Below are positions 23,581 to 63,866 of a stretch of DNA of 63,866 bases, piece by piece. Under the pieces are notes generated by a model. The model ran no database searches. It was not told the DNA's origin and saw only the letters and a list, made by a program, of their open reading frames with translations. The stretch lies in the NCBI GenBank assembly GCA_002269645.1, contig NIVC01003236.1, positions 1 to 63,866 on the forward strand, in the 5' to 3' direction. The translations under genes were made by a program, and so were the position numbers. Within the stretch, counting starts at the first letter, position 1. Each line of letters begins with the position of its first letter. The DNA comes from Macrostomum lignano (taxonomy: Eukaryota).

Positions 23581-23618
<38 letters not shown>

Positions 23619-23716: not shown

Positions 23717-23763
<47 letters not shown>

Positions 23764-23882
23764 CTGTCTATCTATCTATCTATCTATCTATCTGTCTGTC
23801 TATCTATCTATCTATCTATCTATCTATGATAGATCTATCATCTATCTATCTATCTATCTCTGTCTATCTATCTGTCTATCTG

Positions 23883-23914
<32 letters not shown>

Positions 23915-23971
23915 CCTATCTATCTATCATCTATCTATCTATCTATCTCTGTCTATCTATCTGTCTATCTG

Positions 23972-24014
<43 letters not shown>

Positions 24015-24153
24015 CTGTCTATCTATCTATCTATCTATCTATCTGTCTGTCTATCTATCTATCTATCTATCTATCTATGATAGATCTATCATCTATCTAT
24101 CTATCTATCTCTGTCTATCTATCTGTCTATCTGTCTATCTATCTATCTATCTA

Positions 24154-24236
<83 letters not shown>

Positions 24237-38430: not shown

Positions 38431-38928
38431 ATTAATAACATATATCATATTATATGCATAACATAAGTGTTAACGTAACAAGTGAACAGTGACTTATCCT
38501 GGCACTGGCACTTAGACACATCGTTTTCTGGGATGAGCTACAATGTATAGATAATTTAATATAAGCCTACATGCTCCTGTTTCCTTATTAGGGAGTCTTT
38601 CTCAACAGTAGTAATTGGCCGACTCAGACTCCGTCCGTATATTGCTCCAGCAGTCATGTACAACACACACAAGACCGAGCTTCTCTCTCCTTCCCTCCTC
38701 TCTCTCTCTCTCTCCGCTCAGTGAGTGAGCGGTCCGAACTCGGGCAAGAGAAAGTAACGGAAAAAACTGGCTGCACTTGAAGGAGCGGCGGCGCAGATTT
38801 CTTTATAGCAGAGGCCCGTGTCCTTTGAGCTCGATCCCTTGCTCAAAGCAGATTCTTGCTAAACTGGATCTGTCTTCTTCACTTGCCGGCGGTGTTTCAG
38901 TTTAATCCAGTGGAGTAATTTTTCTGCA

Positions 38929-41900
38929 ATGGTTTTAGAGAACGTGAACATTCTTGGACTGGTATCCGTGCTGCTGTTCTATCTGCTCATTCTAGCTGTG
39001 GGCATCTGGGCTGGACGAAGGAGCAAGAACCGCGGCGACAGCGAAGAGGTCATGGTGGCTGACAGGAGCATCGGGCTGACCGTGGGAATCTTCACGATGA
39101 CTGGTGAGTCACAGATCTACGAGGGGCGTCCGGAAAGTAGTGTTACTATTACTCGGTGTGGACGTATGGAAAGTTGCACTTGCATGAGTTTGGTGTCATT
39201 TGAAAGCGGCAAGTCTCTTCTTTAAAATGACACCAATTGCAAGAGATTTGAATATGTGCTTCAAGAGATTTGGACCAAGGGGCTTTAGCACTAAGGGGCT
39301 TTAGCACCAAGGGGCGCCAGCACCAAGGGGCTTTAGCACCAAGGGGCGCCAGCACCAAGGGGCGCCAGCACCAAGGGGCGCCTGCACCAAGGGGCGCCAG
39401 CACCAAGGGGCGCCAGCACCAAGGGGCTTTAGCACTAAGGGGCTTTAGCACCAAGGGGCGCCAGCACCAAGGGGCGCCAGCACCAAGGGGCGCCAGCACC
39501 AAGGGGCGCCAGCACCAAGGGGCGCCAGCACCAAGGGGCGCCAGCACCAAGGGGCGCCAGCACCAAGGGGCGCCAGCACCAAGGGGCGCCAGCACCAAGG
39601 GGCGCCAGCACCAAGGGGCGCCAGCACCAAGGGGCGCCAGCACCAAGGGGCGCCAGCACCAAGGGGCGCCAGCACCAAGGGGCTTTAGCACCAAGGGGCT
39701 TTAGCACCAAGGGGCTTTAGCACCAAGGGGCGCCAGCACCAAGGGGCGCCAGCACCAAGGGGCGCCTGCACCAAGGGGCGCCAGCACCAAGGGGCGCCTG
39801 CACCAAGGGGCGCCAGCACCAAGGGGCGCCAGCACCAAGGGGCGCCAGCACCAAGGGGCGCCAGCACCAAGGGGCGCCAGCACCAAGGGGCGCCAGCACC
39901 AAGGGGCGCCAGCACCAAGGGGCGCCAGCACCAAAGGGCGCCAGCACCAAGGGGCGCCAGCACCAAGGGGCGCCAGCACCAAGGGGCGCCAGCACCAAGG
40001 GGCGCCAGCATCAAGGGGCGCCAGCACCAAGGGGCGCCAGCACCAAGGGGCGCCAGCATCAAGGGGCGCCAGCACCAAGGGGCGCCAGCACCAAGGGGCG
40101 CCAGCATCAAGGGGCGCCAGCACCAAGGGGCTTTAGCACCAAGGGGCGCCAGCACAATTTCCTGTAAAAGTAGCTAGTAGTCCATGCATATAAATAAGTC
40201 ACTGATAATGACAATTGCTCCACAACTTTCCCATTCCAACACGCACAGCCACCTGGGTTGGCGGAGGCTACATCAACGGCACGGCAGAGACGGTGTTTAA
40301 CCCGGCCATCGGGCTGGTTGGTGCTCAGGCTCCGTTTGGCTACGCTTTCAGCCTGGTCTTCGGTTTGTAACAATTCTTGTAGATTTTGTGCGCACTATTT
40401 GCACCAAGTGCATAATTTATAAATTAATTAGAGTAAATAATAAGTATATAACGCGCTTCTTTTAACTGAGTTGCTGGGCCAGCCTCCCAGATCCTCAGTT
40501 GCTGGGCCAGCCTCCCAGATCCTCAGTTGCTGGGCTAGCCCTGTCAGATCCTCAGTTGCTGGGCCAGTCTCCCAGATCCTCAGTTGCTGGGCCAGCCTCC
40601 CAGATCCTCAGTTGCTGGGCCAGCCTCCCAGATCCTCAGTTGCTGGTTGCTGGGCCAGCCTCCCAGATCCTCAGTTGCTGGGCCAGCCTAGCAGATCCTC
40701 AGTTGCTGGGCCAGCCTCCCAGATCTTCAGTTGCTGGGCCAGCCTAGCAGATCCTCAGTTGCTGGGCCAGCCTCCCAGATCCTCAGTTGCTGGGCCAGCC
40801 TCCCAGATCCTCAGTTGCTGGGCTAGCCCTGTCAGATCCTCAGTTGCTGGGCCAGCCTCCCAGATCCTCAGTTGCTGGGCCAGCCTCCCAGATCCTCAGT
40901 TGCTGGGCCAGCCTCCCAGATCCTCATTTGCTGGGCCAGCCTAGCAGATCCTCAGTTGCTGGGCCAGCCTCCCAGATCTTCAGTTGCTGGGCCAGCCTAG
41001 CAGATCCTCAGTTGCTGGGCCAGCTTCCCAGATCCTCAGCTTAATAATATCAGCCACAATCGCTCTCACACCTAGGCGGGCTGTTCTTCGCGAACCAGAT
41101 GCGCACTAGGGGCTACGTGACCATGCTGGACCCGTTCCAGTACAAGTACGGCGAGAGAATGTGCGGCCTGCTGTTTGTGCCGGCTCTGCTTGGCGAAGTT
41201 TTCTGGTCGGCAGCGATTCTGTCCGCACTGGGTGAGCCTCATTAATAGCGAGAGGTGCAAGGTGTATCTACCTACCTAAATGAGCATTGAGTTGTCAGGG
41301 CAGCCTACTATGTGAATTTTCAAAGGACACGAATGCCGGATAGAGAGGCTTCGCGGGCCGTCTGAGGCCCTTGTTTACATTCGAACTAGGCAAAAAATCA
41401 TGTGGCGACGCGAACGCTTCCAGAGTCGAAGTAAAACTTAGGCATCTCAATGAAGTGTCAATTAAATTTACATCTGACACTCCAGATTGCGGGTTTTATG
41501 CTTGATTCAGATGCAACTTTAACCGTAACAGGAGATTAAAATTCGTTTCTGAATTTATTCAACACGCAGGCGCCACACTCAAAGTGATACTAAACATGGA
41601 CAACACTCACGCTGTGATTGTGTCAGCCTGCATCGCACTCGGCTACACTCTGTTTGGAGGTCTCTACTCGGTGGCTTACACAGACGTTGTGCAGCTGTTC
41701 TGCATATTTATTGGACTGGTAAATGATTGCTTCGGCGTCTGCTTGACGTTTTACCTAAAGGTGTCACCTGGATGTGTCTCCAAGTGTGCCTGCAAGTGTG
41801 ATTGCCTAAAGTGCGTCCTGCGCGTGATACATGATGTTTAACAGTTTAACCTTCACTGGGCAGCCTAGTGCAGAGCCTTCGATAACATCTTCCAGTGAAT

Positions 41901-44559
41901 CCTGCTCATTCAGCTAACTCTTGAGAAAATTTACAAGTGAGCCAGTGTCGTACACAGACACGCACGCATACACACGCTCACACAGGGTGTACAACGGGCC
42001 CTAATTGATTTTCTAATCGTCAGGCATGTACACTCTCTGTCAGTGATGGGCACCGCTAAATTTATTTTTAGCGCCGCTAATTAGCGCTGTCGCTAACTGA
42101 TAGAAGAAAAAAGTTGGCGATCGCTAATTAGCGGGCGCCATTTCTACTTTGAGTTTTGCGCAATTAGCGCCGCTAATTTTGGAATGCGCTAATTAATAAA
42201 TACATTTAATATAAACTGCCGTTTCACACGTACTTATGCGCTATTGCACATTTTTAACTCACACTTTTTAAATGAATAAGCTATATAATAATGCTATTGC
42301 TAATAATTTGTTTTTATTATCAATCCTAATAAAAAATCCTCAAGCCGCTGAACTGTCAGAGCAACAGTTATTAGAAAGAGTTCCTAAACTACAATGCTGT
42401 TTGCCTTGAAAAACGTCAAGGGCCCTTGCTACCGGGGCCATGGTCTTATACTCAAGAAGGAAGGCCTGTCGCTTCGCATCATCGCTTAGAATATCAACTG
42501 AGTTGAACGTTGAATTCTTTGATTAAATTAAATTAATCAACAACTTTTTGCTAACGAATTAAAGGTAGTAAGAAAACTTTTGAAAGTCAATGATGAAAAC
42601 AAGATAAATTGTTGATAACGAAAGCAAAAAAAAGATATTCAAATTTCGTTTCGCATTTCTAAGAAAATTAGAAACATTTTAGAGATTTAGTATAGGTGGA
42701 TTTACGTAATATTTAACTTATTACTCAAATATGGTCTCATTTTAAGTATTAAACAGTCATTAACCGTCTAGTTTTATAGCAAAAAAATGAATTTAGCGCA
42801 ATTAGCGATTTTCAGAAAATAATAGCGGCGCTTTGATAGCGCGCGCTAATTTGAATTTCAATTTAGTGGAATTAGCGGCGCTTTAGCGGAATTCAAATTT
42901 AGCGGCGCTAGTGCCTATCACTGCTCTCTGTGCCTTGTGGGTTGGCCCTCATGGTTGCGAATCACAGGACAACCCCCCAGAAATATTTTCTGGCACAAGC
43001 AAGACCCAAATGAATGTTGCCGCACACGGAATAAAACCAGGGGTACTAGTCAGATGCTTAAATTGAATAGAATGATACATTGAAAGCTTGCTGATTGAGA
43101 GCCAACCTATTCACACTTTATCCTCATCAGTGGCTCTCTATTCCGTTCGCCATGATGAACCCGCTGGTGCAGCCCATCGCAACCACAGCGCTCACTCGGG
43201 TTGTGAACGGCACCGAACAGACCGGCTGGCTGGGCACCGTGGCACCTCAGGATGCCGCTTACTACGCCGATAATTTTTTGATGCTCACCTTTGGCGGCAT
43301 ACCCTGGCAGGTGTATTTTCAACGCGTTCTGTCGGCCAAGACGGCTCGAAATGCTCAGTTATTGTCGTACATTGCCGCCTTTGGCTGCTTGGTGATGGCT
43401 CTGCCATCCGTTCTAATTGGAGCTGTGGCAGCTTCAACAGGTAAGAGAGCTGACCCTGATGCAACGTCTTTTGACGCAGTCATACGCACAGGCACACACT
43501 CATACAGGAGTGTACAGCGGCCCTAACTTTATTTATCTTCGTAAATTGCACTAGCAGACCCGAGCCGAGATTCCAATTTAGTCCGAAATTAACGTGACTG
43601 CACTTGGAATCAAGCCTGGGCCTCTGGCACATGGAGCACCGCACCAGACCACTAGGATACGTCCCCCCAACAAATGCCCCTATTCCATCTTACAAACTGG
43701 TAACATGCGCATGGTACTGTTCATGTGGTATCATTAGCCTTGTCCAACACATTCCCCTGCCCCACTGCCAGACTGGGAGAGCACAGCCTACTTCAACCTG
43801 ACCCAGTCGACGCCATTTAGCAAAGACGACATGAAGCTGATTCTGCCGCTAGTCCTGCAGTACCTCTGCCCGCCGGCCGTCGCTTTTGTCGGCTTGGGCG
43901 TCGTCTCCGCCGCCGTGATGTCCTCAGCGGACAGCTCGATCCTCTCTGCCGCTTCCATGTTCGCTCGCAATGTGATGAAGCCGATTTTTTGGCAGACGGC
44001 AACTGACCGCCACGTCATCTGGTCGATGCGGGCAGCCATTGTAGTTGTTGGCATCATTGCTTGCATCTTAGCCATCCAGATCTCGACAATCTACGGCTTG
44101 TGGTTCCTCTGCTCGGATCTTGTCTATGTAGTCCTGTTCCCGCAGCTGATCTCTGTTATCTACCTAGACTGGTCCAACACGTACGGCAGTTTGGCCGGTT
44201 ACGTCACCGGGATGTTTCTGAGAATATCGGCCGGCGAGGCGCTGATTTTCCTGCCCGCTCTGTTCCACTATCCCGGCTTTGTTGACGGCAGCGAATTTTA
44301 TCAACGATTTCCCGTTAAAACATTCAGCATGCTGGCTTCGTTGGCTTCGTCCGCTCTAGTGAGCTACATGACTCACCGAATTTTCACTGAAGGAAAGCTG
44401 CCACCTGCTTGGGATGTTTTTCAATGCGTTGTCCCGAAGGAGATTCGAAGTGTCACCATCGCTGCTGCTGCTGAAGATGATGATGGATTGATGCTGCCAC
44501 CAATGGTTCAGTCGAAGCCAGAGGCCAACGAGCCTGAGTTGCGATCTGATATTGATTAA
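38929..44559 (+). CDS. SLC5A7: High-affinity choline transporter (SLC5A7/CHT1), 6 exons, about 563 aa
   Basis: Exons 38929-39103, 40249-40362, 41076-41231, 41570-41718, 43131-43440 and 43772-44559, with consistent phases. Motifs: [118 protein letters not shown]. Confidence 0.97.
39275..40155. repeat. 16-bp GC-rich minisatellite (GCACCAAGGGGCGCCA)
   Basis: About 55 tandem copies in SLC5A7 intron 1. Confidence 0.97.
40470..41040. repeat. 28-bp minisatellite (TTGCTGGGCCAGCCTCCCAGATCCTCAG) in SLC5A7 intron 2
   Basis: Same family as the array at 16975-17400. Confidence 0.95.
42041..42923. mobile_element. Non-autonomous hAT-like element (MITE), 883 bp, in SLC5A7 intron 4
   Basis: TIRs CAGTGATGGGCAC / GTGCCTATCACTG (12/13). 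Perfect 8-bp TSD CTCTCTGT at 42033-42040 and 42924-42931. Subterminal TTAGCG(C/G)CGCTAA palindromes at both ends. Confidence 0.92.
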
Positions 44560-45512
44560 GCTTGGACATCCGCGTTGTAGCGGGTTAGTACAGTCTATAT
44601 ACTGGTAGCTTGACAAAATTTATTGTTGTTTTTAGATTCGCTAAAGTATTACAGTAGTTGAGGAATAAAACTTAAGGCTATCTAATGTATAGATGAAGCT
44701 ACTTAAATATTTTTTATAATTGGGTAGCTCATCCGTTAGCTGTAGCTAGAAATGCACACGCTCCGGAAATTAACAAGAAAGTAGAATATTGTATTTGATT
44801 AATTCTATTTTCTCATTCGCAGTTATTCACAAAATTCGAGGTTGTTTTTTTTTAATTTCAAAATTTTGATTTTTTTTAAATCTGCTTGAAGCATATACTG
44901 TCAAAGTATTATTGTTTTTTCAATATCTAACTTCAAATATTTTTGTTTTTATTTTTAATATAAATTTTGCGCTCATATTTGTGCATTGCATACTGTAGTA
45001 TCAATGCCGATGCAAACGATAGTTATTCCGTTTCAAAAAGGTTGTAGAATCAATATTTAACTTTTTAATCAAGTATTTTGTTTAAAGTATTTTTAATTGC
45101 TACCTCGCAAATCCTCAGCAGTTTTATTCATTTTTAGTGAACTCGACGAAGGTTGTATCTTGATGTTCATTTTCTTTATAGCTCTTTCTGTAGTTTTTTT
45201 TTACTTTTCGGCTGACACTTTTATGCTTTACGATAGTTTGTGTCCATTCTACTTTTGCGATTATTATAACATGAAAATTCACTCAAATACACGTTGATTT
45301 TTACAGCACTCTTTGTTGAAGCGCTGCCCGAACTTAGAAGAGATGGGTTATCAAGCTTATTAAATAATAAAACTCATTCCACACTTAGAATTAACTGACT
45401 ATTAGCTGATTAACTGACTCCCCTTTTTCATGGCTGTATAATTTTAATTTTTCGAGATTAACTACGATGGGAACAAGCCTACTACAACTATCGCCTGTTT
45501 TGGGCCTTCTAA

Positions 45513-46297
<785 letters not shown>

Positions 46298-46636
46298 TCT
46301 GTTTTGGTGTTTTGTAGTTCTGATTCTCAGAAATTCTGTATTGCGTTTCTCAGCATGATCAGCTTCAGCGAATGCCTTTCTAAATAGAGCGTCTTTGTAA
46401 AATAATTTGAACGGGCGAACAAGGAGTGTTTAACTATTTATAGGCTCCACCATACCGCTCACTGGCCAGTACACAAACCGACGTTGAAAAACATGAAGTG
46501 CAGTAGTTGATTTTACCCTCATTGCCGTCAACCTTAATGAATTATTCATGAAGATCTTAAACCGCCTTAATTTTACTGGAATAACACTGCACGCGGTAAG
46601 TCCTTTATAAGAACGGCACGGTAAAGAGCTCCTCAC

Positions 46637-49297: not shown

Positions 49298-50537
49298 GTA
49301 AATCCTAACCTAATAGTTACCATGACAACAGGAGACGAAGCATCCGCCTTGAAGCCGGCTGTGAGGAAACAACGATTTCAACTTAAAAACCTTATAATAA
49401 AAAACCGAATTACATCATATATAAAAGTACGAGAAATCCTTTTTAGTCGTTCTCTACATTTTATCCAATATTAACGCTGTACATTGGAAACTGCGTTGTG
49501 ACAGCTAGTCTGGTAAACTCCATTAATTTATTGGATTTGACTTGTTATACAACAGCTTATAGTAGTCCCTTAGCTTCACCGGTTAGCCAGTAGCTTCGCT
49601 TAATAGTAGCAAGTAGAGTGTAGTTTCATTAAATTTTAATTCAGTTTTAGCTAAAATAACGAACAAACAATTTTCGCTGCAGGTACTTCAAGCGAGTTGC
49701 CTTGCTGTAAATCTGGTTACAAACCAAATACTTCGTGGTAATCGGCAAGAAAAATCATCCAATAATCGACGAGATATACAAAGTCAGCCTGCTGTCACTG
49801 ATCAATCGAGGCAAGTCGTTGCTATGAATACTACAGGCTGCATCTTGCCAAACTAAATTTGATCGATAATAAATACTTGAAACAAATACTTGAATTTACT
49901 TCAAACGTATCCCTCCAAAGTATCTTTTTATCACACTTTGTTAATCACAATTTAATAGTGATTAGGTGAATAAGATAAACAGCCTACTTGAGTCAACAAA
50001 TATACTCTGAAGTTGTTAAGCCGTTTATATACGAGAAGTAACATATTTCAAGGTAAAATAACATAACAGAATAAATTACAATGTCATATAGTTAATTACA
50101 CAACCGACTCTAAAATGATAGAGCCAACTCAATTAGAGATAAAAGCTCGTCGACAAATACGCACGAAACTAACAAAAGATTATTTACATTAATTAATTTC
50201 CAAGGCAAACGCACTGTCGGGAACACATCAAGTTAGCAAACCTAGTCAAACACAGGCGCAAATAATCCATCAATTTATGAGTTAGCCAATAGCACTACAT
50301 GTAAATGGGATTGCCATTCAATTATCGGGTATTTCCTATTCCCCGATAGCAAATAACGATGATTGCTGCCCATGAACACTGCTTAGTTTGGACTATATGC
50401 AATCATAAAACGCATACCGGATGCAATATTGTCAGCTTCAATACATCCATTGTAGCATTCAGAGACTACATGTACATATAACAGCATCGCAGATGCGTAT
50501 TAGTCGAATTAGAAGCATCTAAGTCGAATCTTTCGCG

Positions 50538-51866
50538 ATGGCTGTCGAAAGCATGAAGCTACTTGCAATATTGCTTCTGTTCTGTTCGATCCTCGCAACG
50601 GAATGCATCGCCAAGCGGAGAGACTATCAAGCCGAGCTGTTCAAATACTTGAAGAACAACATTACTGACTACAGTCCGAAACTGCGACCTACGCTCGACC
50701 CAGACCAGGAGGTGGAAGTACACGTCATCGCCTCGCCAAGAATGATTGTATCCGTGGACAGCGCCAAGCAGAGCATGACAATAGCTGGCATGTTTTTTGC
50801 CAGCTGGTACGAGGAGCGACTGGTCTGGGACCCCCAGCTGTTCGGAAATGTCACAATGATGGACTGGGACAGCAACCAGCTCTGGCTCCCGGTCATAATC
50901 GTCTACAACGGCATGGGAGACAATCAACTACTCAGTCCTCAGTTTCCGCCGTACATCACTTCCGTGCAGTCCAATTTGTCTGTGGTATCGACAACCTGGA
51001 GACAGGAGTGGGAGTTCTCTTGCGAGTTTCATATGACCCGCTTCCCTCTGGACCGTCACATCTGCGACATGGAGCTGTTCATGAATGCCCGCGCATTGGA
51101 CAAAATCGTCCCGAGAAAAGGCTTATTATTGGCAAACTCATCGTTTGAATACAACGAAGGCGCGGCTTTTGCTCGTAACAGCGAATGGCGGGTGCTGAAC
51201 CTCAGCACATTCATACGGTACAACGACTTCAAAATGTTCGAAAATCTGCCGCCAGTGAAAATGCCGACCTTTGTGATGCGACTGGAGATCGAGCGAGTGT
51301 CCACTTACTACATGCTCAACGTGGTGGCTCCCCTAATGCTGCTCACGCTGCTCCAGGTGCTCGTCTTCTTCGTGCCAGTCGAGTCTGGAGAGAAGCTGGG
51401 CTTCGGCATCACCATCACGCTGAGCTACACGGTGTTCCTGCTGCTGCTGGACGGCCTGCTGCCCAAGTCGCAGTCGATGCCGGCCGTGGCGTCGTTCATC
51501 ACGGCGGCCATGGTGCTGTCGACGTCGTCTCTGCTGCTGACGTCGGTGGCGATTCGGTTCCACTTCGCTGCGGAGTCTCAGCCGATGCCGTCGTGTCTCC
51601 GGGTCGTGTTCGTGAGCTGCCTGGGCCGCGTGATGCTGTGCGGTGAGAGGCGAGGCGGCAGCAGGACGGCACCGGAGGGAGACCTCGATGATTCTGCTGT
51701 GAACAAACCGAGCCGTGACGATGTTAGGAACGGAGATACGTCCGGAGAGCCGAGGCGCTCGGAGTGGCAGGTTGCAGAGGTCGCCGTGGAGCGGCTGCTG
51801 ATCCTCCTAGGCTGTCCGGTCACTTTGGCCATCACGTTTTGTTTCCTTATTTTTCCGTTTCTTTGA
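50538..51866 (+). CDS. Intronless Cys-loop ligand-gated ion channel subunit A (divergent, non-alpha nAChR-like), 442 aa
   Basis: Signal peptide, LRP motif, WxPxI, Cys loop CEFHMTRFPLDRHIC (C-x13-C), four TM helices, and M2 ESGEKLGFGITITLSYTVFLLLL of cation type. No vicinal CC in loop C. Confidence 0.93.
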   Translation: MAVESMKLLAILLLFCSILATECIAKRRDYQAELFKYLKNNITDYSPKLRPTLDPDQEVEVHVIASPRMIVSVDSAKQSMTIAGMFFASWYEERLVWDPQLFGNVTMMDWDSNQLWLPVIIVYNGMGDNQLLSPQFPPYITSVQSNLSVVSTTWRQEWEFSCEFHMTRFPLDRHICDMELFMNARALDKIVPRKGLLLANSSFEYNEGAAFARNSEWRVLNLSTFIRYNDFKMFENLPPVKMPTFVMRLEIERVSTYYMLNVVAPLMLLTLLQVLVFFVPVESGEKLGFGITITLSYTVFLLLLDGLLPKSQSMPAVASFITAAMVLSTSSLLLTSVAIRFHFAAESQPMPSCLRVVFVSCLGRVMLCGERRGGSRTAPEGDLDDSAVNKPSRDDVRNGDTSGEPRRSEWQVAEVAVERLLILLGCPVTLAITFCFLIFPFL

Positions 51867-52334
51867 AAAAACATTCGGTGGCACCTTCACGGAGATGGGT
51901 TTTCTGATGGGTTAAAAATTCTCGTGTCTGACGAGAGTTTCGATATCTAAGCACCAAATTAACTTTGAAGATGATACGAAAACATTTTAATAGTATAATA
52001 AAGTCGGTTACTAATATATAGTTGCACTGAGTGAGGTGAAGAGTAAGTATCACGCTTCGACGTCACTAGTAAATTTTTTGGCGAACTGAATGTATACATG
52101 TATACGGACACTGTACTAAAAAATTATGATTGCTCTTTTCTAGGCCAAGTTTTCATATGGTAAGACCCTCTTGGCACAGCGCAAAAAGCTTAAAAAGATC
52201 AGAATAAACAACTTTTCTATGCATTGCCGCTATCCAATAAGATTCTTTTAAGTTTTCGATTAAAGCTTGTCAAAAAACGCATGCTTGCTTCAGGTGTTAT
52301 TTATAATATAAAGTAGTACAATCATATAATGATA

Positions 52335-52615
52335 GATAAAACCTGCCCTAATGGGCAGATTTGCAACCGACAGCTCAGCCGCAGCTATTGCGTGTCGCAT
52401 CTGAAGGCTGCGTACGGCTGTTCAGTCCGAGGACTGGGGGGGGGGGTTCATACACACCCTCAATTACCCCCAGCTAATGCTGGCACCCATTTTACAGCTG
52501 GGTGAACTGAAGCGTGTCAGTGTCTTGCTCGAGGACACAAATTGTTCCAAGAGGGTCGAGAATCGAACCCCAGACCTTTCAGTCGTGAGTCCGACGCTCT
52601 GACCACTAGGCTAGA
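52335..52615 (-). mobile_element. tRNA-derived SINE
   Basis: On the minus strand: A box TAGCCTAGTGG (52613-52603) and B box GGTTCGATTC (52569-52560), followed by GTGTCCTCGAGCAAGACACT...CACCCAGCTGTAAATGGGT, which resembles conserved SINE central domains. It does not form a complete tRNA. Confidence 0.8.
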
Positions 52616-53521
52616 TTTAACTACATCCAATAATAAGACAGTTCAGATGACGCAAGTGCAGGAAGGTTCCGTGGGAATCGGCCAGAATTGCAAGTCTGAA
52701 AACGGCGCAGTATTATTTGATGCAAACATTTTGAAGGGACTGCGTGCGGAAAACTTATTATAAATCACGCATGGGTTTCATCATATATTCTTTACCTTTT
52801 CATCCATATACATGTGAAAAATACTTGCTTGCTGTTATTTATTTTAAGTTACGCGTCCTAAAGCGCGTCTGCTGCCCCTTGAGGATCAAGGGAAAGACTG
52901 AGCACTACCGTGACTTATTGATATGTAATGTTTAAGGGTCTTTGACCTTAACTATGTATATAAGCTAGGACACAATGGATCAATGGTACAAGCTAAAATT
53001 AAATTGGGCATTAGTTATTATTATACGCTATCGTATCTCAGATGAATCACATGTAAGTTCTTAGTTTGCGGCCGATTAGAAACTTATAGCTGCATTTAGT
53101 CATTCTACATTAGATGTCCACACGCTCCTCGAGCGAGCTTTATCCAGAGGCAAATATCAGCAGAGGAGCTGCGTAGAATCCGCAAATATCAGTCATACCT
53201 GGCAAAGTCAATTTAGAAAATGAATCGCAAATAATACTAATTTTCTGATGAGACGAAAGTCACACAATGAGATATACCTGGTTCAGTCCTGCATCAGATT
53301 AATTACGGGATACTCAGTGACTGCAATTCACAGATGCTCGTAGCAACTAAATAGGCAGACTATGCAAACTTCAGAATTTGATAGCCTACTGCAGTGTCAA
53401 CATGTAAAACGCATTTACGCTTGTATAGCTCAAAGGCTCGGGTTCAATAGGATCTGGGGATTTTATTGTCCAAGCTTAGCACGCTGCTCATCATTGAGAC
53501 GGCTAACTCAACTACATCCAC

Positions 53522-54820
53522 GTGCCACAGTTCAGCCTTACCCGCTTCTGTTTGGTCTTCAGCGCCATCGCTAGTGTTCAGGTGGCTCAGGCTAGAGACT
53601 TTGAAGCGGAATTGCTCGATTACTTGAAGACTAACAACTCTCGGTATAGCCGTACGCTCAGGCCGAAACTAGATCCACATCAGGAGGAGCTCGGTGCTTG
53701 TCTGCTGAAAATTCTGGACGTAGACAGCGCCAAGCAGAGCGTCACCATAGCCGCAACTGTCTACGCGATGTGGTTTGATGAACGCCTCGTCTGGGACCCG
53801 ACCCAGTTTGGGAACATCACAATATTGGAATGGGACAACCAGAAAATCTGGTTTCCTCCAATCGTTATTCTGAATGGTCTCGGCGACAATCAGCTGCTGA
53901 AGCCGGAGTTTCCATCATTTTTGGCCTCGATGTCATCGAACAAGACATTGGTGTCGACTATTTGGCGACCAGATTTCGAGTTCACCTGCCAATTAAGCAT
54001 GTACCGATTTCCAATGGATCGACACGTATGCAGTTTTAGTTTGTATATGGAGGACCAGGCTCAGCTATACAAAAGTATAGTTCCAAGCAAGAAATTTTTG
54101 TGGAATGCGGAGAATGAGCAAGATGTGGAGTTAAATGAACTCGGTGCGCATAAAAACAGCAGCGAGTGGCGACTGCTAAGTTTGAGTACTTCGGTAGAAT
54201 ATGGACTTGTCAACTTTTTTAAGAATTCACCACTGATGCTAATACCAGCCTACAATATGCAAATGGAAATCGAGCGAGTGTCCACTTACTACATGCTCAA
54301 CGTGGTGACTCCACTACTGCTGCTCACGCTGCTCCAAGTGCTTGTCTTCTTCGTGCCAGTCGAGTCTGGAGAGAAGCTGGGCTTCGGCATCACCATCATG
54401 CTGAGCTACACGGTGTTCCTGCTGCTGCTGGACGGCCTGCTGCCCAAGTCGCAGTCGATGCCGGCCGTGGCGTCGTTCATCACGGCGGCCATGGTGCTGT
54501 CGACGTCTTCTCTGCTGCTGACGTCGGTGTCGATTCGGTTCCACTTTGCTGCGGAGTCTCAGCCGATGCCGTCGTGTCTCCGGGTCGTGTTCGTGAGCTG
54601 CCTGGGCCGCGTAATGCTGTGCGGTGAGCGGCGAGGCGGCAGCAGGACGGCGCCGGAGGGAGACGCCGATGACTCCGTGGTGAGCAAGGCGAGCGACGTC
54701 GGTGAAAGGCGCTCGGAGTGGCAGGTCGCAGCGGTCGCCGTGGAGCGGCTGATGATTTTCTTGGGCTGTCCTGCCGCAGTGGCCATTGTGGTTGCATTTG
54801 TCATTGTTCCATCCTGTTAA
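53522..54820 (+). CDS. Cys-loop ligand-gated ion channel subunit B (paralog of 50538), about 430 aa, with no in-frame ATG before the signal peptide
   Basis: Cys loop CQLSMYRFPMDRHVC, the same M1-M3 as subunit A, and a signal peptide FSLTRFCLVFSAIASVQVAQA. The frame opens after TAA at 53504. A 3' splice site (CTAAC...CACAG) ends at 53530. Confidence 0.88.
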   Translation: MPQFSLTRFCLVFSAIASVQVAQARDFEAELLDYLKTNNSRYSRTLRPKLDPHQEELGACLLKILDVDSAKQSVTIAATVYAMWFDERLVWDPTQFGNITILEWDNQKIWFPPIVILNGLGDNQLLKPEFPSFLASMSSNKTLVSTIWRPDFEFTCQLSMYRFPMDRHVCSFSLYMEDQAQLYKSIVPSKKFLWNAENEQDVELNELGAHKNSSEWRLLSLSTSVEYGLVNFFKNSPLMLIPAYNMQMEIERVSTYYMLNVVTPLLLLTLLQVLVFFVPVESGEKLGFGITIMLSYTVFLLLLDGLLPKSQSMPAVASFITAAMVLSTSSLLLTSVSIRFHFAAESQPMPSCLRVVFVSCLGRVMLCGERRGGSRTAPEGDADDSVVSKASDVGERRSEWQVAAVAVERLMIFLGCPAAVAIVVAFVIVPSC

Positions 54821-55369
54821 TTTTACTCGGCTAGACAAAAAATCGAAGCACAGTGATAGAGCGCTCTGTAGTAATATGAACTTATTAAACGTAATTTAAA
54901 AAAGCAGTCTCTTTTGTCTAATAGTTATTCTCTTTTACGTTCTCTAAGAAATGCCTCGCTGCTGAAGCCTTGGGGTCCAAAATTAAAGGTCACATTTGCT
55001 TAAACTATTTACACTAATGGGCAATGCTTAAAATACAAAATCCAACTTTAAAATCGAAGTGGTGTCAATCGTTCTAAATACACAAATTTTATTCTTTTTG
55101 TGAATCTTTGTGGACTAATTTCTTTCTTAACCTTTTCTGCAACAAAGGGCATGATACTCCAAAACTGAGTCTATTTTGTACCTTATGTATGGAAAAGCTT
55201 TCACACAGAACTTACGGATTCAGAACGGTGAGTTGTATACAACTGTCACAACTTGAGACATCGCAAAATCTGAAGCGATCGCTGAGTTGACTTCTGCAAC
55301 TTTAACTTTTCGACTGCACCTTCGACTGCACCCGCATACTGCCGTCCAGGGCCATGAAAGGCACAGAGT

Positions 55370-55745
55370 GAGGACCAAGGGTTTATTAGGCTGAGGACCA
55401 TGTGTTCATTGGGCTGAAGACCATGGGTTCATTGGGCTGAGGACCACGTGTTCATTGGGCTGAAGACCAAGGGTTCATAGGGCTGAAGACTATGGGTTCA
55501 TTGGGCTGAAGACCATGGGTACATTGGGCTGAGGACCACGTGTTCATTGGGCTGAGGACCATGGGTACATTGGGCTGAGGACCACGTGTTCATTGGGCTG
55601 AGGACCATGGGTACATTGGGCTGAGGACCACGTGTTCATTGGGCTGAGGACCATGGGTACATTGGGCTGAGGACCACGTGTTCATTGGGCTGAAGACCAA
55701 GGGTTCACTGGTTTGAGGACCATGACTTCATGAGAACTGAGGACC
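55370..55745. repeat. 23-bp minisatellite (CATTGGGCTGAGGACCATGGGTA)
   Basis: Direct reading, with two alternating variants. Confidence 0.93.
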
Positions 55746-56512
55746 AATAATGTGGTAGCGTGTGGCGTGTGTCTGGGGTGTTTGCATGGTGCTAGTTTGG
55801 TTTGGGTGTGTTATCGAATTATCGATTGTTCGTCCGAAGCTTCTAACGTTTTCGGCTTTGATAAATCTAAAGACAAAATATGTCAATAAATAAACTTTAT
55901 CTGACATTTTCCAATATGCGAAATTTCCTCCACTCAATTGGCAGTGAAATTTGATAGCGAAGCTGCTATTCTAGTATGATGCTTCGAATTTGGACGAAGC
56001 AATTGCTTCTCTTTCGACACCTAGATTTCGCCTCGAATAGTAAATTAATTTCACAAAAATATCAAAGCAGTCACGAACCTATAGAGTAAACACCTGAGCC
56101 ATTTTTACACAGACATGTATAGATGCATGGACACCTGAGGTATAGGCCGGTGGGATATTTTCGAATCTCTTTTAGGGTTATTATTGTCATCTGGATCGGT
56201 ATCTGCCAGTCAAGGTCAACTGATTATAGGCTTTTAGCCTGTTAGTCAGTTCTGCAAAGCCTGTTAGACAGTCTGTAGAGATCTCTAAAACATAGTATAA
56301 GCAGACTACTAGAAGTGGAAAGATAAAATATTTAAAAGACAAATTTTACATGCTTGGGTTCATACTCAATTTTTAATAGTAATCACGAAAACAGTAAATG
56401 TCTATTCCACTATGCGAAAAACCGGTTCTCAACATCTAATTTTAGAACTTCCAAATATGGTAAATGTTGACCTGAATGCTCTTTGCCGCCTCTCCTTTGA
56501 TATCAATTACCG

Positions 56513-58280
56513 GAGGAGGGGCACAGAGGAAGGCATTCATGCCTTCAAAAGGAGTACAGGGTGGAGCGCCCATAGTCATGCGTCAGGCTCTGCCCTGGAT
56601 TTTGTAGAGATTACCGAAATTCCAAAATTGCCGAAAGTGGGCTAGATGACCGCTAGCCCACACGAGGCTGGCGTAACAGATTGAGGTGCGCATAATGGCA
56701 GTGTAAATCCACCACAGTTTTCTGGGGGTGAGCCCTAGGTGGTTCCTACGGCGCGCCTGATCTGAGCCAGGACAGCCAGGGCTTTTTTGGCTTTGGTTTG
56801 GATGTGCGGAGTCCAGTTAAGCCTGTGGTCCAGAGTGAGGCCCAGGCCGCGGACGTGCTTCTCCATGGAAATATCCTTTCCATAGAGGGCGAGGGGCTTA
56901 ATGGTCCAGAGCAGTTTGTTGGTAAACATGACCGCTGTGGTTTTCGACTCTGAGAGTCTAAGGCCACATTGGTTTGCCCAACGCTCCGCTCGTCCCAGAA
57001 AGCCCTGCAGAAGATCTCTGAGGTATCAAACGAGGGACCCTCGCATATGGTGGTCACATTATAGGCATAGCCCACCTTGAGAATGGTGTCATGGAGATCA
57101 CTGCAAAGCAACTCATCCATGCGTCCTTTCTGGACAGGCGCCGTTAGAGAGCTGCTGTTCAGGTGGACCACGACAGTGCGGTTCCGGATCATGAACATGA
57201 TCCACCGGACAAGGGGAGGGTGCGTGGCCCTGGAGTCCAGGGCTCTGCAAAAGGCCTCGAAGATGACATTGTCAAAGGCCCCCTCAATCTCCAGGAAAAG
57301 CGAGAGGGCAAAGCCGCTGCCAAGAACGGCCCTCTTCAGGAAGTCAACGATGACATGGAGGGCACTCTCAGTGGACCTGCCCGCGCGGAAGGCGTGCTGG
57401 TTCTGCGAGAGTGGGAAGCGCTTTAGCTCGATTGAAAGTAAGCGCCAAAGCACCAGTCTTTCGAGGAGCTTAAGGCAGAAGGAGGTAAGGCTGATAGGCC
57501 TGAATTCACCTATTCGTAGTCGCAATATCCAGGCTTGGGGATAAAGACCACCCGGGCCTCTCTCCATGCAACTGGTACATAGCCCAGCTCCACACAAGCT
57601 CGGAGGAGACGACAGAGCAGGTCCAGGAAGCGGTGGTTTTTCACTGCCTCGTGCAAGAACGCTTAGTAGATGCCATCGGGCCCAGGCGCCTTGAACGGGT
57701 TGAAGGACCTTGCCGCTCTAATAATGCGGTCTTTGGTGATCATAGACTTTGCTTGGCCTTGCCCTCCCACGGTGTGGTCAGGCGGGCCCTGCTGAGTCGG
57801 AGATTTAGGGAAGAAACTGTTGAGCATGAGCTCTAGAGTCTCTTCAGAGCTCTCTGTGACCGAGCCATCAGGTCTCTTATCAACAGAGAGTTTAGAAAAA
57901 CGGTCGTTCGTGAGTGCCTTTACCACGTGGGCTACGGGGCGAGAGCCCTCAAGCCCTTCGCAATATTGGCGTCACTTGGCCGCCTTGGCCCTTCTGACTT
58001 GGCCCTTAAACTCGTGGATAGCACGGGTATAGGCCTCTCTATCAGATGGGTCTTTGGTTTTGAACGCTCGTCTTTGGAGGGTCCTGGCTCGGCGCCGAAG
58101 GCTCTGGGTTTCACCAGGGAGCAGATTTCTTGCCTTTGAAGGCCTTAAGAGGGCAGGCTGCCTCATAGGCAGTGGTGATCGCCCCGTCCAGGGGGGAGGC
58201 GTGATCATCCACAACCCGGCAGTCAGAGAGGTCACTGGGGACTGCTAGATCGGAACCCAACCATTCGATGGATGGAGTTG
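56513..58280 (-). mobile_element. Degenerate non-LTR retrotransposon (R1/LOA-like LINE), RT region, dead copy
   Basis: FNPFKAPGPDGIY, FRPISLTSFCLKLLERL, QHAFRAGRSTESALH, FLEIEGAFDNV. YADD is mutated to YAYN, the PQGG segment is deleted, and there are several frameshifts and stops. Confidence 0.9.
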
Positions 58281-59684
58281 CCCTAGCTCCAGAGGCTTAT
58301 TCTCTGGCGGCTGCTTTCATGCGAGCTGACAGCAATGCCCCTCAGCAATAATCAGCACGCCTTCCGTACCGAGAGAACGACTGACAGCGCCCTGCATGCG
58401 ATAGTCGAGAAGATTGAACGGGCGGTCCCGGTGTAAAAAGTAGGGTCAAGCGGACGTCTTTCGGACCCCGACGGGTCCTCATTGGGGTTGCGTCTGCTTT
58501 GAGAAAAAAATGTCTAGTTTTTACATTAAATCACTCTAAAGGGCCATATTTCAGTTACTTCATGGCTAAAAAGTTTGTCCACTTTGTACTTATGTGGGTC
58601 CGTTATTCGTCCCCAATGGTCCGTTTAGATCCGATCGACTCCTAAAAAATGCAAGTTTTTTCTAACGCCGTATAAATGTCCCTTTTGCTGTGATTTCGGT
58701 TAGTTTTGGGTTTATTTTCAAGTATTCACCTTTGTGTACTGACAACTAGCACTTTTTGACAGTCCGATTTAAAAAGATACGTCAGATGAAAAATGACCCT
58801 TGGTCATTCTCCAGTTGCATAATTTACTACTTGTGATAGTAGAAAAGTTGGCGAAGTTTCTTTTCAAACTTTTCAAACTTTTCAAACTTTAGTCTTTTGT
58901 GTTTTGGGGCTTCTAGATTGCAGTCGCTTGACATTAGCCTTTCAGTTGAAAACAAATTAATCTTTTTGTGTGAATGTTATATTTTCGTTTTTCATAGACT
59001 AATTTTTACGCTATCTTTTAAAGCTACATTTTGGTTGGGGTGTCGCGTAAAATACGTATCAACAGTAAGTCTGATCATGCCTTACTACTTTCGACAGTAG
59101 GGTTCACCAGAAAGGACTATACCCTGAGTGATAACTGCTTTTTATTAAAAATACCAAATTACCTGGTTATTAATTGCGTACAATCACTTTGATTATATAA
59201 ATATTTTGCAGTGCCAGAGCTTTTGAATTTGGAAAAGAAGTTGGTCAAATTTTCAGTGCGCACCTTATCCGTGTGAATAAGAGTTTAGCAACGTTGGGCG
59301 TGGGTGGGTTAAAACTCAAGAATTTCGGGAAAACAGAAAGTGAATGAGCTCAATGTAGCACTGAGCCGCCGAAGGGCTGGCGCCAGATTTTGGTGGACCA
59401 GGGCCCCGAAGCCCTAACTAAGATCAGTAGCGCAACGAGAAATTTTTAGGGGGGGGATTCTGGAGGGTAAAGCCCGGGAGGAAGCGGAGGGGTGTCAGGG
59501 TTGCTTTCACAAGGTCGAAATTTCATATCCTCGAAAATACATATCTCACATAGCACCCTATCCTTTCTTATCTCCCATTATCTTCTTATTTTTACCATCT
59601 CTTATCTCCTCGCTTCTCTCGTTTCTCTCCTCTCCATTTTCTCTACTCTCAGCTCCTTTCCTAGAGAAATTTCATATATTGTTT

Positions 59685-60065
59685 GGGAGCCTGCTGTTTG
59701 GGAGGGGACCGCTTGCTGTTTGGGAGGGGACCGCTTGCTGTTTGGGAGGGGACCGCTTGCTGTTTGGGAGGGGACCGCTTGCTGTTTGGGAGGGAACCGC
59801 TTGCTGTTTGGGAGGGGACCGCTTGCTGTTTGGGAGCCTGCTGTTTGGGAGCCTGCTGTTTGGGAGGGGACCGCTTGCTGTTTGGGAGCCTGCTGTTTGG
59901 GAGGGGACCGCTTGCTGTTTGGGAGCTTGCTGTTTGGGACCCTGCTGTTTGGGAGGGGACCGCTTGCTGTTTGGGAGCTTGCTGTTTGGGACCCTGCTGT
60001 TTGGGAGGGGACCGCTTGCTGTTTGGGAGCTTGCTGTTTGGGAGGGGACCGCTTGCTGTTTGGGA
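59685..60065. repeat. Minisatellite of about 14-22 bp units (GCTTGCTGTTTGGGAGGGGACC) inside the EnSpm-like element
   Basis: Direct reading. Confidence 0.9.
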
Positions 60066-60213
60066 ACTTAGAAAGAATTAGAAATTAAAGAATACGTAAA
60101 ATACGCATTTAGAGAGATTTAGAGTTATATAGCGACAGGTACAGGGAGGCAGATAAACATGTTCCAGGTCCTCTCTAACCCTGTGTGCAACCCACCCAAA
60201 CCTACATTTACAG

Positions 60214-60394
60214 AGGACGACCCTCTGAGCGCGATGTAGAAGTCGCCGTTATTCAGGTGCTGAAACACGCTGCCGAGAGGGAGGCCGCACGCCAACGTAG
60301 AAAATCCCTACGTGAAGAGCACCACGAAATGCCAGGAGACACCAGCGAGGCGCAGCAAGGGATGAGAAAGCGGGCCAGAATTGACTCTGATTGA
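60214..60394 (+). pseudogene. Terminal-exon-like coding remnant carried by the EnSpm-like element
   Basis: Acceptor CATTTACAG followed by GRPSERDVEVAVIQVLKHAAEREAARQRRKS...RKRARIDSD*. It loosely resembles C-termini of transposon accessory proteins. The identity is not established. Confidence 0.4.
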
Positions 60395-60484
60395 GATGTC
60401 GAGGAGTAACTGTTTATTTCTTTTCACCACAAAAACATTAATTTTCTGGATACGCACCAGAATATCCTATGTATTAAAATTCAG

Positions 60485-60850
60485 ATAGAGATAATTAGGA
60501 TTCAGGTAAGAGATAATTAGGATTTAGGTAAGAGATAATTAGGATTTAGGTAATAGATTAGGATTCAGATAAGAGATTAGAATTCAGGTAAGAAATTAGG
60601 ATTCAGGTAAGAGATAATTAGGATTCAGGTTAGAGATTAGGATTCAGGTAAGAGATAATTAGGATTTAGGTAATAGATTAGGATTCAGATAAGAGATTAG
60701 AATTCAGGTAAGAGATTAGAATTCAGGTAAGAGATTAGGATTCAGGTAAGAGATAATTGGGGTTCAGATAAGAGATAATTAGAATTTAGATAAGAGGTTA
60801 TTAGGATTTAGGTATTAGATCAATAGAATTCGGGTATTTGATAATTAGGA
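60485..60850. repeat. 19-22 bp minisatellite (TAAGAGATAATTAGGATTCAGG)
   Basis: Direct reading. Confidence 0.9.
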
Positions 60851-62743
60851 CTATTTCGGCCACTGCTGCCAAACCTGCTGCTCAACGACCCTGCCCGTTC
60901 TGCTAATGTTGCGCTAAGTGATGTTATATATTTCATACTTTCTATTTTACCCGTAAACTATATGTAACTACGTAAACAGGAAATAAATGATAACTAAAAT
61001 GCATTTTTCATTTCGCTCTTCAAAGTCTTCGTATACGTGATATAACTTTAACAAACTGAAACACTGCACGCAATGCAACCTACTGAAAGTAGTGTGTAAA
61101 TACTGGGGTCGAATAAAAGATTGCAAGTAGGAGTCATGAGGACCCCTACTGAACAGGGTCCGGTCTGCGTCTGAATCAGTCCTACATCAGCGTCTGGCGG
61201 ACTCGATTTCAGTAGGACATAAGCACCCTACCCAGACGGCCCAAAACTGACGCCCGATGGACGGCTTTTTTTACACCGGGGTACTGGGTGACGGTTACGC
61301 CCTGGCTCTTTTTCTCGACATTGTTGGCGCCTTCGACAACGTTATCTTTGAAGCGTTTCAGAGGACCCTTCAAAACCACAAAGCTCACGCTACCCTCATA
61401 CGGTGGATCATGTACATGATCTCTAACCGTACGGTCACTGCCCAACTTCTCGGGCAAACTACCTCCGCCAGAGTCTGTAAGGGTGGACCCCAAGGCGGAG
61501 TCCTCAGCCCGACGCTCTGGAATCTGGTCATGGACGCTCTTCTGGGTGACTCCCGACCTGATCCCGTTTTCAAAGTCGGGTATGCTGACGACGTCACTGC
61601 CATTGTGGCAGGGCCGTCCCCCAGCACGCTCAGGGATCTGATGCAGAGCTTTATCCGCAAAGCAGAATCCTGGGCCAATGACAACGATCTGGAACTCTCT
61701 GAGCCCAAAACCGTTGCCATTATGTTCACCAGCAGAATACGCTGAAACATACGACCTCTGCAGTTATAAGGCAGAGATATTGCCTTCGCGCACCAGACCA
61801 GATGTCTCGGGTCATAATTGACCACCGGCTCAACTGGTCCTTTCACGTGAAAGCAAAAGCCAAGCGTGCCTCAACCATCCTGGCCCAGCTCCGACGAGCA
61901 CTTGGCACCTCTTGGGGTCTATCCCCAAAGCGACTTTGGTGGATCTACAATTCCGTAGTTAGACCTGCCATTACGTACGCCTCGGTTGTCTGGGTTAGCG
62001 CTACCCAGGTCAAAAGTCATGCAGATTTGCTCAACGCAATCCAGGGCAGAGCGTGTAGGCTTATCTGCAACGCCACCAGGTCCACGCCCTTTGCCGGCAT
62101 GGGGGCCTTCCTTAATCTACCGCCTCTCGACCTCTTCGTCAGGGGTGAGGCGGCTAGAACGACGCGGCGTTTACTTGATGCCGGTGTCAAATTCCTTTGC
62201 ATGAGGGCACCTGCTAAGCGGAACCTCGTCCCGCATAGCGACCTGTGCCTCAACATTCTTAACGAGTGTCAGGCCAATCGCGTCTTCACCGATGGCATTG
62301 CCTCAACGCTCAACATATTGCTAAAAACTTTGCTTTCCTGACCCTCAACCGCAGTGGCTGACTCTGGACATATTCGTCACAGCTGGCTGGTCCCTGCCAT
62401 CCTGCGATTCTGCCAGAAAGTCGGATTTTAGCCATAAGCGATAGTGTATTCAGTACACCCCTGTACGCCAATTACACTGCGCCTTAGTGCAGCCTTTTCA
62501 AGCCTCCAAATTTCATCAGCACGTCGATCACACGCGGCTGCATCAGCTCTGACTTCTTTAGTCACTGGCCTTCATCCAGGCGGAGCTTCTGAACCTTCAA
62601 CAGGTGGCACCAGGTGAGTTTGAGAAGTTGCACAACAAAAAGTTAGCCCGTGCTCTTGAATTTCGTGTGCCTGCGTTGATCCGTTCAAGCGCATTAAAAA
62701 ATTGTCAGAGGGGGGGTAAATTCCCCCTTGGTAGTTCTACTGA

Positions 62744-63866
62744 TAATAGTAGCAAGTAGAGTGTAGTCTCATTAAATTTTAATTCAGTTTTAGCTAAGCA
62801 ACGACCAAACAATTTTCGCAGAGTACTTCAAGCGAGTTGCCTTGCTGTAAAGCTGTTTACAAACCAAATACTTCGTGTGATCGGCAAGAAAAATCATCCA
62901 ATAATCGACGAGATAAACAAAATCAACCTGCTGTCACTGAATAATCGAGGCAAGTCGTTGCTATGGATACAACAGAATGCATCTTAGGACAGGATGCATA
63001 TTTAGAACAAATTACTTGAATCGACTTCAAATGTATCACTGCAAAGTAATTTTTTATCAAACTTTGGTAATCACGATTTATAGTACCGCATAAACAGCCT
63101 ACTTGAGTCAACAAATATACTCTGAAGCTTTTAAGCCGTTTATATGCGAGAGGAAACATATTTCGAGGTAAAATAACAAAACAGAATAAATTACAATGTC
63201 ATATAGTTAATTACACAACCGACTCTAAAAATGATAGAGCCAAGACATCAATTAGACATGAAAGCTCGTTGAAAAATACGCACGAAACTAATAAAAAGAT
63301 TATTTACATTAATTAATTTCCAAGGCAAACGCACTGTCAGGACAAATCAACCTACGAGTAATCAAACACAGACGCAAATGATCCATCAATTTATGAGTTA
63401 GCCAATAGCACTAAATGGGATGGCGATTCAATTATTCAATTATTCAATTATTCAATTATTCAATTACTCAAACGGGTATTTGCTATGCCCCGATAGCAAA
63501 TAACCACGATTGCTTCCCATGAACACTGCTTAGTTTGGACTATATGCAATCATAAAACGCATACCGGATGCAATATTGTCTGCTTCTATGCATCCATGTA
63601 GCATCCAGAGATTACATATACCGGCATCGAAGCAGTGTATTAGTCGAATTAGAGGCATCTAAGTCGAATCTTTCGCGATGGCTGTCGAAGGATGAAGTTG
63701 CTTGCAATATTGCTTCTGTTCTGTTCGATCCTGGCAAAGGAATGCCTCGCCAAGCGGAGAGACTATCAAGCCGAGCTGTTCAAATACTTGAAGAAAACAA
63801 ATTACTGACTACAGTCCGAAACTTGCGACCTACGCTCGAACCCAGACGCAGGAGGTAGAAGTACAC
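62744..63866 (+). repeat. Segmental duplicate of 49601 to about 50727 (upstream region and 5' end of receptor A)
   Basis: Collinear similarity of roughly 85-90% by eye. A second short block, 62336-62404, matches 49129-49197. Confidence 0.9.
63678..63866 (+). pseudogene. Third Cys-loop receptor copy (A-like), 5' end only, frameshifted as given
   Basis: MKLLAILLLFCSILAKECLAKRRDYQAELFKYLK, then a +1 insertion leading to TGA at 63806, with further single-base indels. It could be a pseudogene or long-read indel errors. The window end truncates it. Confidence 0.7.

Follow-up and report, generated by a model that had tools for sequence, protein, structure and literature searches.

The window analysed here, positions 1 to 63,866 and with them the whole of contig NIVC01003236.1 in its deposited orientation, of the flatworm Macrostomum lignano (assembly GCA_002269645.1), carries a tandem array of three genes, A, B and C, that resemble subunits of nicotinic acetylcholine receptors (nAChRs). 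A, B and C probably encode functional subunits of pentameric cation channels with an orphan ligand, and belong to an intronless, tandemly duplicated, nAChR-derived family specific to the Macrostomum lineage. The genes and the elements within them to which the text refers are as follows.

50538-51866 (+): gene A, a single-exon open reading frame (ORF) of 442 aa with an ATG start, comprising signal peptide, extracellular domain (ECD), M1-M3, MX, a short intracellular domain (ICD) and MA-M4
53522-54820 (+): gene B, an uninterrupted ORF of 432 codons with the architecture of A and no in-frame ATG ahead of the signal peptide
63678-63866 (+): copy C, the 5' end of a recent duplicate of A with five 1-nt insertions or deletions (indels), cut off by the end of the contig
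49601-50537 (+): upstream (putative promoter) region of A, copied together with the coding start to 62744-63677, upstream of C
51021-51065 (+): Cys loop of A (C162...FPLD...C176)
51387-51455 (+): M2 pore helix of A, G(-2')E(-1')K(0')LGFGITITL(9')SYTVFLLLLD(19')G, numbered by alignment to alpha1 M2
51276-51692 (+): gene-conversion tract in A, codons ~247-385, from before M1 to the middle of the ICD
54257-54673 (+): partner of the conversion tract in B, near-identical to 51276-51692 of A
53525-53530 (+): candidate spliced-leader (SL) trans-splice acceptor of B, CCACAG, by sequence pattern
51997-52002 (+): candidate poly(A) signal AATAAA, 131 nt past the stop codon of A (pattern scan, consensus match only)
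54884-54889 (+): candidate poly(A) signal ATTAAA, 64 nt past the stop codon of B (pattern scan, consensus match only)

Gene A runs without interruption from the signal peptide to M4 and matched the Pfam families Neur_chan_LBD (1.2e-24) and Neur_chan_memb, the transmembrane (TM) part (3.9e-18). The succession of Neur_chan_LBD and a four-helix Neur_chan_memb was found above the gathering score in A, in B and in the copies c1 and c3 of a second locus (L001, see below). Comparison of A and B with the whole window by tblastn revealed one further copy only, namely C. The interval between B and C (54.8-62.7 kb) was without receptor sequence and contained instead minisatellites (22-46 bp) and two reverse-transcriptase fragments (Pfam RVT_1) at 56746-57597 (-) and 61257-61745 (+). 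These two fragments, the second taken over 61257-62341 (+), are degenerate, of the non-long-terminal-repeat type, and about 69% identical to one another at the DNA level.

Residues were read both in the sequence itself and in alignments to solved nAChRs. The Cys loop of A has the form C162-x13-C176 with FPLD, and the residues C162, F169, P170, D172, H174 and C176 are invariant in six paralogues. Alignment of SGEKLGFGITITLSY to alpha1 M2 placed the Glu of GEK at -1' and a Leu gate at 9', with neither Pro at -2' nor PAR; over its whole length the M2 of A presents Glu at -4', SGEK with Glu at -1' and Lys at 0', Thr at 6', Leu at 9', Val at 13' and Asp at 19', and no PAR-type anion motif. The segment following M3 was matched to the MX helix of alpha1 and is MX-like. 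Judged from these alignments, the elements for fold, assembly and cation gating are kept (Cys loop, pre-M1 Arg, M2-M3 Pro, MX/MA), as are those for cation gating in M2 itself (-4' Glu, -1' Glu, 6' Thr, 9' Leu, outer Asp). A preliminary description of this DNA had named the Cys loop, the -1' Glu of GEK, the 9' Leu and the MX helix and had predicted a cation-type pore; each of these features could be read again, and SGEK, the 9' Leu and the lack of a PAR motif in the alignment to alpha1 M2 point to the same type of pore.

Vicinal cysteines (CC) were absent from the ECDs of all six paralogues. The column of the loop D residue W55 holds Met in A, Thr in B and Leu, Ile, Tyr or Phe in the remaining paralogues, and that of the loop B Trp holds Asn in A and Glu in B (N/E/I/S/A/N over the six), while Trp occupies it in 71% of the 160 nearest nAChR-like domains. 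In loop C the position of Y198 is non-aromatic, and Phe or Tyr is retained at the position of Y190 in most paralogues. The loop A Tyr is present in five of the six, including A, and is replaced by Leu in B. Also, the near-universal Asp of WxPD (Asp in 66% of outsiders) is Val, Pro, Leu, Ile or Glu in the family, and the Gln of the Cys loop, present in 91% of outsiders, is an invariant His throughout (H174 in A). The preliminary description had listed as missing the vicinal cysteines, the Trp of loops B and D (Met in A, Thr in B), the second loop C Tyr and, in B, the loop A Tyr, and all of these absences hold. As far as can be read from the alignments, the canonical cation-pi site for acetylcholine (ACh) appears to be dismantled on both faces, with loss of the CC tip, the loop B Trp, the WxPD Asp, the loop D Trp and Y198. 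These readings support an orthosteric pocket that would be unable to take ACh in the canonical manner, in subunits predicted to form pentameric cation channels. Foldseek matches of an AlphaFold2 model restated the nAChR fold only and were not used for residue-level claims.

A word-index homology search with A gave only two matches, as low-complexity words of the TM segments swamped the candidates, and an exhaustive HMMER search of 1.84 billion representative proteins was therefore carried out, yielding 7815 matches. Among these representative proteins, close relatives came from M. lignano only. They include P0002 (48% identity) and P0001/PAA92206.1 (45% identity). The contig with PAA92206.1 (L001) was found to hold a second array:

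7884-9185, 10001-11302 and 12786-14102, all on one strand: three full-length uninterrupted tandem copies, c1, c2 and c3
16369-16671: a fourth, partial copy

Two further proteins match copies of this locus: P0003 is a fragment identical to c2, and P0020 corresponds to c3 but differs from it at 16 of 217 aligned residues, nine of these differences forming a single terminal run. The next-best matches were 25-31% identical and were nAChR-like proteins from bivalves, gastropods, annelids, a brachiopod, corals, amphioxus and a hemichordate. On L001 the public annotation, which we take to be transcript-based, contains the middle copy only (Mlig033226g1), and 7884-9185, 12786-14102 and the fragment 16369-16671 are uncalled. 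The public record likewise has no gene with the product of A, and exact-product look-ups of A, of A from Met6 and of P0001, P0002 and P0003 were empty. As the array on L001 is also intronless, the intronless tandem arrangement is a property of the whole family. The preliminary description had spoken of intronless tandem nAChR derivatives, which agrees with the window copies, the L001 array and the dismantled aromatic box for ACh. It had also called for a count of copies beyond the window; a second array does exist, but the family is small, with about 8 distinct members seen in two loci.

A neighbour-joining tree was calculated from the family and its 45 nearest outsiders, with sequences of cephalopod chemotactile receptors (CRs) left out. 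The family was monophyletic in 100 of 100 bootstraps, and A and B were sisters with the same support; the L001 copies grouped with P0002 in 76 of 100. Kimura distances were 0.46-0.85 within the family and at least 1.7 to anything outside. Among solved structures the best match of A was the muscle nAChR alpha1 subunit (8e-34), and a profile of the family ranked alpha3 (178 bits, 2.3e-51), alpha1 (176 bits, 1.1e-50) and alpha7 (172 bits, 1.2e-49) above solved beta and delta subunits (about 136-153 bits), 5-HT3A (about 125 bits) and DEG-3 (121 bits). The octopus CRT1 entries (8eis, 9e6b) lay outside the 60 best solved matches of the profile, i.e. below 119 bits and behind every nAChR and 5-HT3A chain, although they did appear, at about 107 bits, when the mollusc orphan P0029 was the query. 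Since nAChR chains ranked at the top and CR structures fell outside the best 60, the family is an nAChR derivative and appears to have no special tie to the cephalopod CRs beyond shared nAChR descent. No description of this M. lignano clade was found in the literature, where ligand-gated ion channels of the species are treated in a bulk catalogue only (PMC6881066).

Paralogues were 32-50% identical in the ECD and 73-96% in TM1-3; for A and B, which share 64% of their amino acids overall, the values were 50% and 96%. Identities of single segments were computed with the A/B pair excluded. M2 was 96% identical across paralogues, loop A 56% and the Cys loop 53%, and the binding loops were the most divergent segments (D 29%, F 28%, B 23% and C 18%). 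Proportions of synonymous (pS) and nonsynonymous (pN) differences were estimated by the Nei-Gojobori method. For the ECD, all paralogue comparisons gave a saturated pS of 0.72-0.84 and a pN of 0.32-0.47; for TM1-3, pS was 0.52-0.64 and pN 0.08-0.16. A pN well below a saturated pS excludes long-dead pseudogenes, and the paralogues are old genes that purifying selection has maintained rather than dead retrocopies.

The A/B pair was exceptional in having a pS of only 0.06 in TM1-3 as against 0.84 in the ECD. Third-position identity between the two genes rose at a sharp boundary, from 0.1-0.45 in the ECD to 0.85-1.0 from codon ~247, and stayed high until codon ~385. This jump, together with the low pS of TM1-3, shows that gene conversion recently made the pore-encoding halves of A and B alike. 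Self-BLASTN further showed that 49601-50723 and 62744-63866 are a duplicated block of 84% identity, about 940 bp of which lie upstream of the coding start; C arose from A by a younger duplication. Six full copies are all intronless, indicating that their ancestor was intronless too, and the family grew from it by tandem and dispersed duplication. Scars of retroposition were not recognisable at the copies, either as a poly(A) tract or as a target-site duplication, nor could a parent gene be identified.

Comparable nAChR expansions, intronless, tandem and specific to a lineage, with binding sites that have degenerated, have been documented in molluscs and annelids (PMC6896357), including the bivalve expansions invoked in the preliminary description, and likewise for the cephalopod CRs (PMC11526382, PMC13174522) and the orphan Alpo receptors (PMC10338036). 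The flatworm genes resemble these lophotrochozoan expansions (bivalves, gastropods, annelids; Jiao et al. 2019, PMC6896357) in being single-exon tandem genes whose paralogues cluster by lineage, in their cation-type pore and in the many members that lack conserved principal binding residues; the function of the lophotrochozoan genes is mostly unknown. They differ in belonging to Platyhelminthes, in forming a separate monophyletic clade without an orthologue outside M. lignano in the databases searched, and in number, with about 8 members seen compared with 99-217 nAChR genes in bivalves (PMC6896357). Likeness to the cephalopod CRs (CRT1/CRB1; PDB 8eis, 9e6b) extends to nAChR derivation, lack of introns, clustering, loss of ACh-signature residues and a cation pore (PMC11526382, PMC13174522). 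However, CR function has been defined by sensory expression and hydrophobic agonists, whereas the flatworm family is known here from its sequence, and CR chains scored below 119 bits with the family profile, compared with 178 bits for alpha3. The parallel with CRs drawn in the preliminary description was thus apt for intronless tandem genes that have lost ACh residues, but profile ranking and M. lignano-only monophyly place the family outside the CR clade.

Alpo4 of Alvinella pompejana (PMC10338036) is, like the present genes, an nAChR-like orphan, in this case lophotrochozoan, that lacks the CC tip of loop C, is phylogenetically isolated and has no known agonist; unlike them, it keeps the key aromatics, whereas the flatworm family has lost the Trp of loops B and D and the WxPD Asp. 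The canonical nAChR subunits (vertebrate alpha1, alpha3 and alpha7, beta, delta) are the closest solved relatives and share the Cys loop, the GEK filter, the 9' Leu and MX/MA. The flatworm family is only about 25% identical to them, it retains of the aromatic box only the loop A Tyr and one loop C aromatic, and it has no vicinal cysteines, a very short ICD and no introns. 5-HT3A and ZAC are also cationic Cys-loop receptors, but 5-HT3A reached only about 125 bits compared with 172-178 for nAChRs, and ZAC was outside the best 60.

If the genes encode functional orphan channels, a small molecule other than ACh, be it environmental or endogenous, would open them from a remodelled pocket between subunits, and the differing ECDs would set ligand specificity on one common pore. 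B would be expressed through SL trans-splicing, with the SL supplying its AUG. Going by the alignments, the combination of variable binding loops and a shared pore may be taken as the pattern expected of ligand diversification; it would also agree with a loosening of constraint on a site no longer used in accessory subunits. 

Several observations weigh against functional channels with a new ligand. Structural (non-binding) subunits of nAChRs likewise lack binding residues. In loops B, C and F the match to solved receptors is uncertain and less sure than that of other segments, and the AlphaFold2 model, built on a 4-sequence alignment, was poor, with a mean confidence (pLDDT) of 52. The annotation lacks A, B and two of the three L001 copies, which fits very low or no expression. 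A search for the gene ID Mlig033226 gave no result, nor did one for receptor annotations in the supplements of two M. lignano papers, and expression, localisation and ligand data were not found. The two remaining points concern B and C. The ORF of B starts with GTG, five codons past a stop codon, and has no in-frame ATG before residue ~80. When the 186 coding bases of C were aligned with A, five 1-nt indels (four of them insertions) and about 8 substitutions were seen, so that the uninterrupted tandem ORFs of the preliminary description are a fact for A and B and not for C. Owing to the five indels of C, A is the sole unambiguously intact gene of the trio.

Both defects have other possible origins. 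In C, the ratio of indels to substitutions at the extreme end of the contig fits long-read consensus error as well as decay. In B, the base that follows the acceptor-like CCACAG (53531) is in frame. The SL of M. lignano ends in ...TTGCATG, the acceptor motif reads [T/C]TNCAG, and trans-splicing affects 30% of genes (PMC8629364); use of the AUG of a flatworm SL as initiator has been documented (Cheng et al. 2006, cited in PMC9851317). Joined to UUC AGC, the SL AUG would give B a normal signal peptide, MFSLTRFCLVFSAIASVQVAQA. Alternatively, B may have a 5' exon that was not seen, or may have lost its start codon. A lies 1.65 kb upstream of B on the same strand, and an operon-like arrangement is conceivable.

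A chemosensory role is one hypothesis among several. It holds that ciliated epidermal or rostral sensory cells express the channels and that environmental compounds gate them, in convergence with the cephalopod CRs, and we consider it possible, if somewhat unlikely. The family is intronless, tandem and lineage-restricted, as CRs and many chemoreceptor families are intronless (PMC11526382); its ACh residues are lost, its most variable segments are the binding loops atop an invariant pore, and its members are mostly unannotated, as expected of genes active in few cells. However, evidence of expression or of a ligand was not found, only about 8 members were seen, and the paralogues are old, with saturated pS and no recent burst of birth and death, and have ECDs under purifying selection. 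Nor is there specific kinship with CRs, and the orphan nAChR-like expansions of bivalves were tied by their authors to development, immunity and stress, not to sensing (PMC6896357). The more far-reaching proposal, that a free-living flatworm independently derived a small family of ionotropic chemoreceptors from a retroposed nicotinic receptor, with divergent binding domains on one pore that gene conversion helps to keep uniform, in convergence with octopus CRs, is in our view unlikely.

Instead of forming receptors of their own, the subunits might join canonical ACh-binding alpha subunits and contribute pore and modulation without an agonist site, like vertebrate beta1, alpha5 and beta3. An nAChR-type pore and gating, the nAChR alpha and beta subunits as best solved relatives, the persistence of the loop A Tyr and one loop C aromatic and a position about 6 kb downstream of a choline-transporter gene would agree with such an accessory function. 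It is nevertheless quite improbable, considering a pocket altered on both faces, including the loss of the WxPD Asp and the exchange of the Cys-loop Gln for His, a Kimura distance of at least 1.7 to canonical subunits compared with 0.46-0.85 within the family, the very short ICD, and an invariant family-specific M2 that suggests self-assembly among members. That the window copies are partly or wholly non-functional retrocopies or decaying duplicates, especially B and C, is very unlikely, although the risk is higher for C alone. The GTG start of B after a stop codon, the five 1-nt indels in 186 bp of C, the missing annotation of A and B, and the report of Jiao et al. that intron-poor nAChRs of bivalves are more often silent (PMC6896357) speak for decay. 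Against it, A and B hold ORFs of ~430 codons although synonymous divergence is saturated, and their pN lies far below pS; an in-frame acceptor would provide B with the SL AUG; and the 5 indels (four insertions) to about 8 substitutions of C at the contig end resemble long-read consensus error.

The public annotation of NIVC01003236.1 contains a spliced Kir gene (3162-10415), a single-exon gene of 224 aa (12500-13174) and a spliced DNMT3 gene. The earlier remark that every other gene of the window has large introns was therefore nearly right: Kir and DNMT3 are spliced, but the gene at 12500-13174 is annotated with a single exon. The product of the latter (+) is of low complexity and rich in Pro, Ala and Gln, and matched nothing in Pfam above threshold, with a weak sub-threshold SPX-like match only. 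Comparison of exons in the window with M. lignano proteins gave 100% identity for a DAO-domain protein, 99% for the Kir channel BOX15_Mlig015253g1 and 94% for DNMT. The DNMT3-type DNA methyltransferase gene (15337-~20415, -) is annotated with 846 aa and the domains ADD_DNMT3 and DNA_methylase; DNMT1/3 have been reported lacking in several flatworm lineages. Exons of a high-affinity choline transporter (CHT; SLC5A7-like) were found at 38929-44559 (+), about 6 kb upstream of A on the same strand. Their best database matches were the CHTs of neodermatan flatworms, at ~60% identity, and no CHT of M. lignano was among the matches, so the M. lignano CHT may be unannotated. The adjacency of this gene to the nAChR-derived genes may be coincidence.

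Micro- and minisatellites are very dense in the window (4094-5372, 16203-19529, 21343-24367, 37793-40944, 45467-46387, 55369-55746, 59680-60069 and 60473-60850). The arrays include about 900 bp of (GTT)n and result in many spurious long ORFs on both strands. A dispersed repeat is common to both contigs at 72-86% identity, at 41952-42039 and 42926-43042 of the window and at 4187-4275 and 15203-15387 of L001. One of its modules ends in a motif resembling the T-arm of a transfer RNA (tRNA), GGAATCGAACC, in which nothing was called by ARAGORN or Rfam, and the repeat is suggestive of a tRNA-derived short interspersed nuclear element. Rfam and tRNA scans across the window gave no matches.

The family is restricted to its lineage and partly unannotated, yet of an already known kind, that of lineage-specific, intronless, tandem expansions of orphan nAChR-like genes. 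The public annotation lacks at least four intact members (A, B and L001 c1 and c3), and B is a candidate for a gene with a start codon derived from the spliced leader. M. lignano is transparent and tractable for transgenesis, and cell type and function are therefore directly testable. Should the chemoreceptor interpretation prove true, no family of ionotropic chemoreceptors would have been described in Platyhelminthes before this one. If the subunits are functional and not gated by ACh, they would represent a third independent spiralian lineage, after the cephalopod CRs and the bivalve and annelid expansions. In each lineage retroposed nAChR genes would then have been freed from cholinergic transmission, and nAChR scaffolds would be a recurrent raw material for new ligand specificities.

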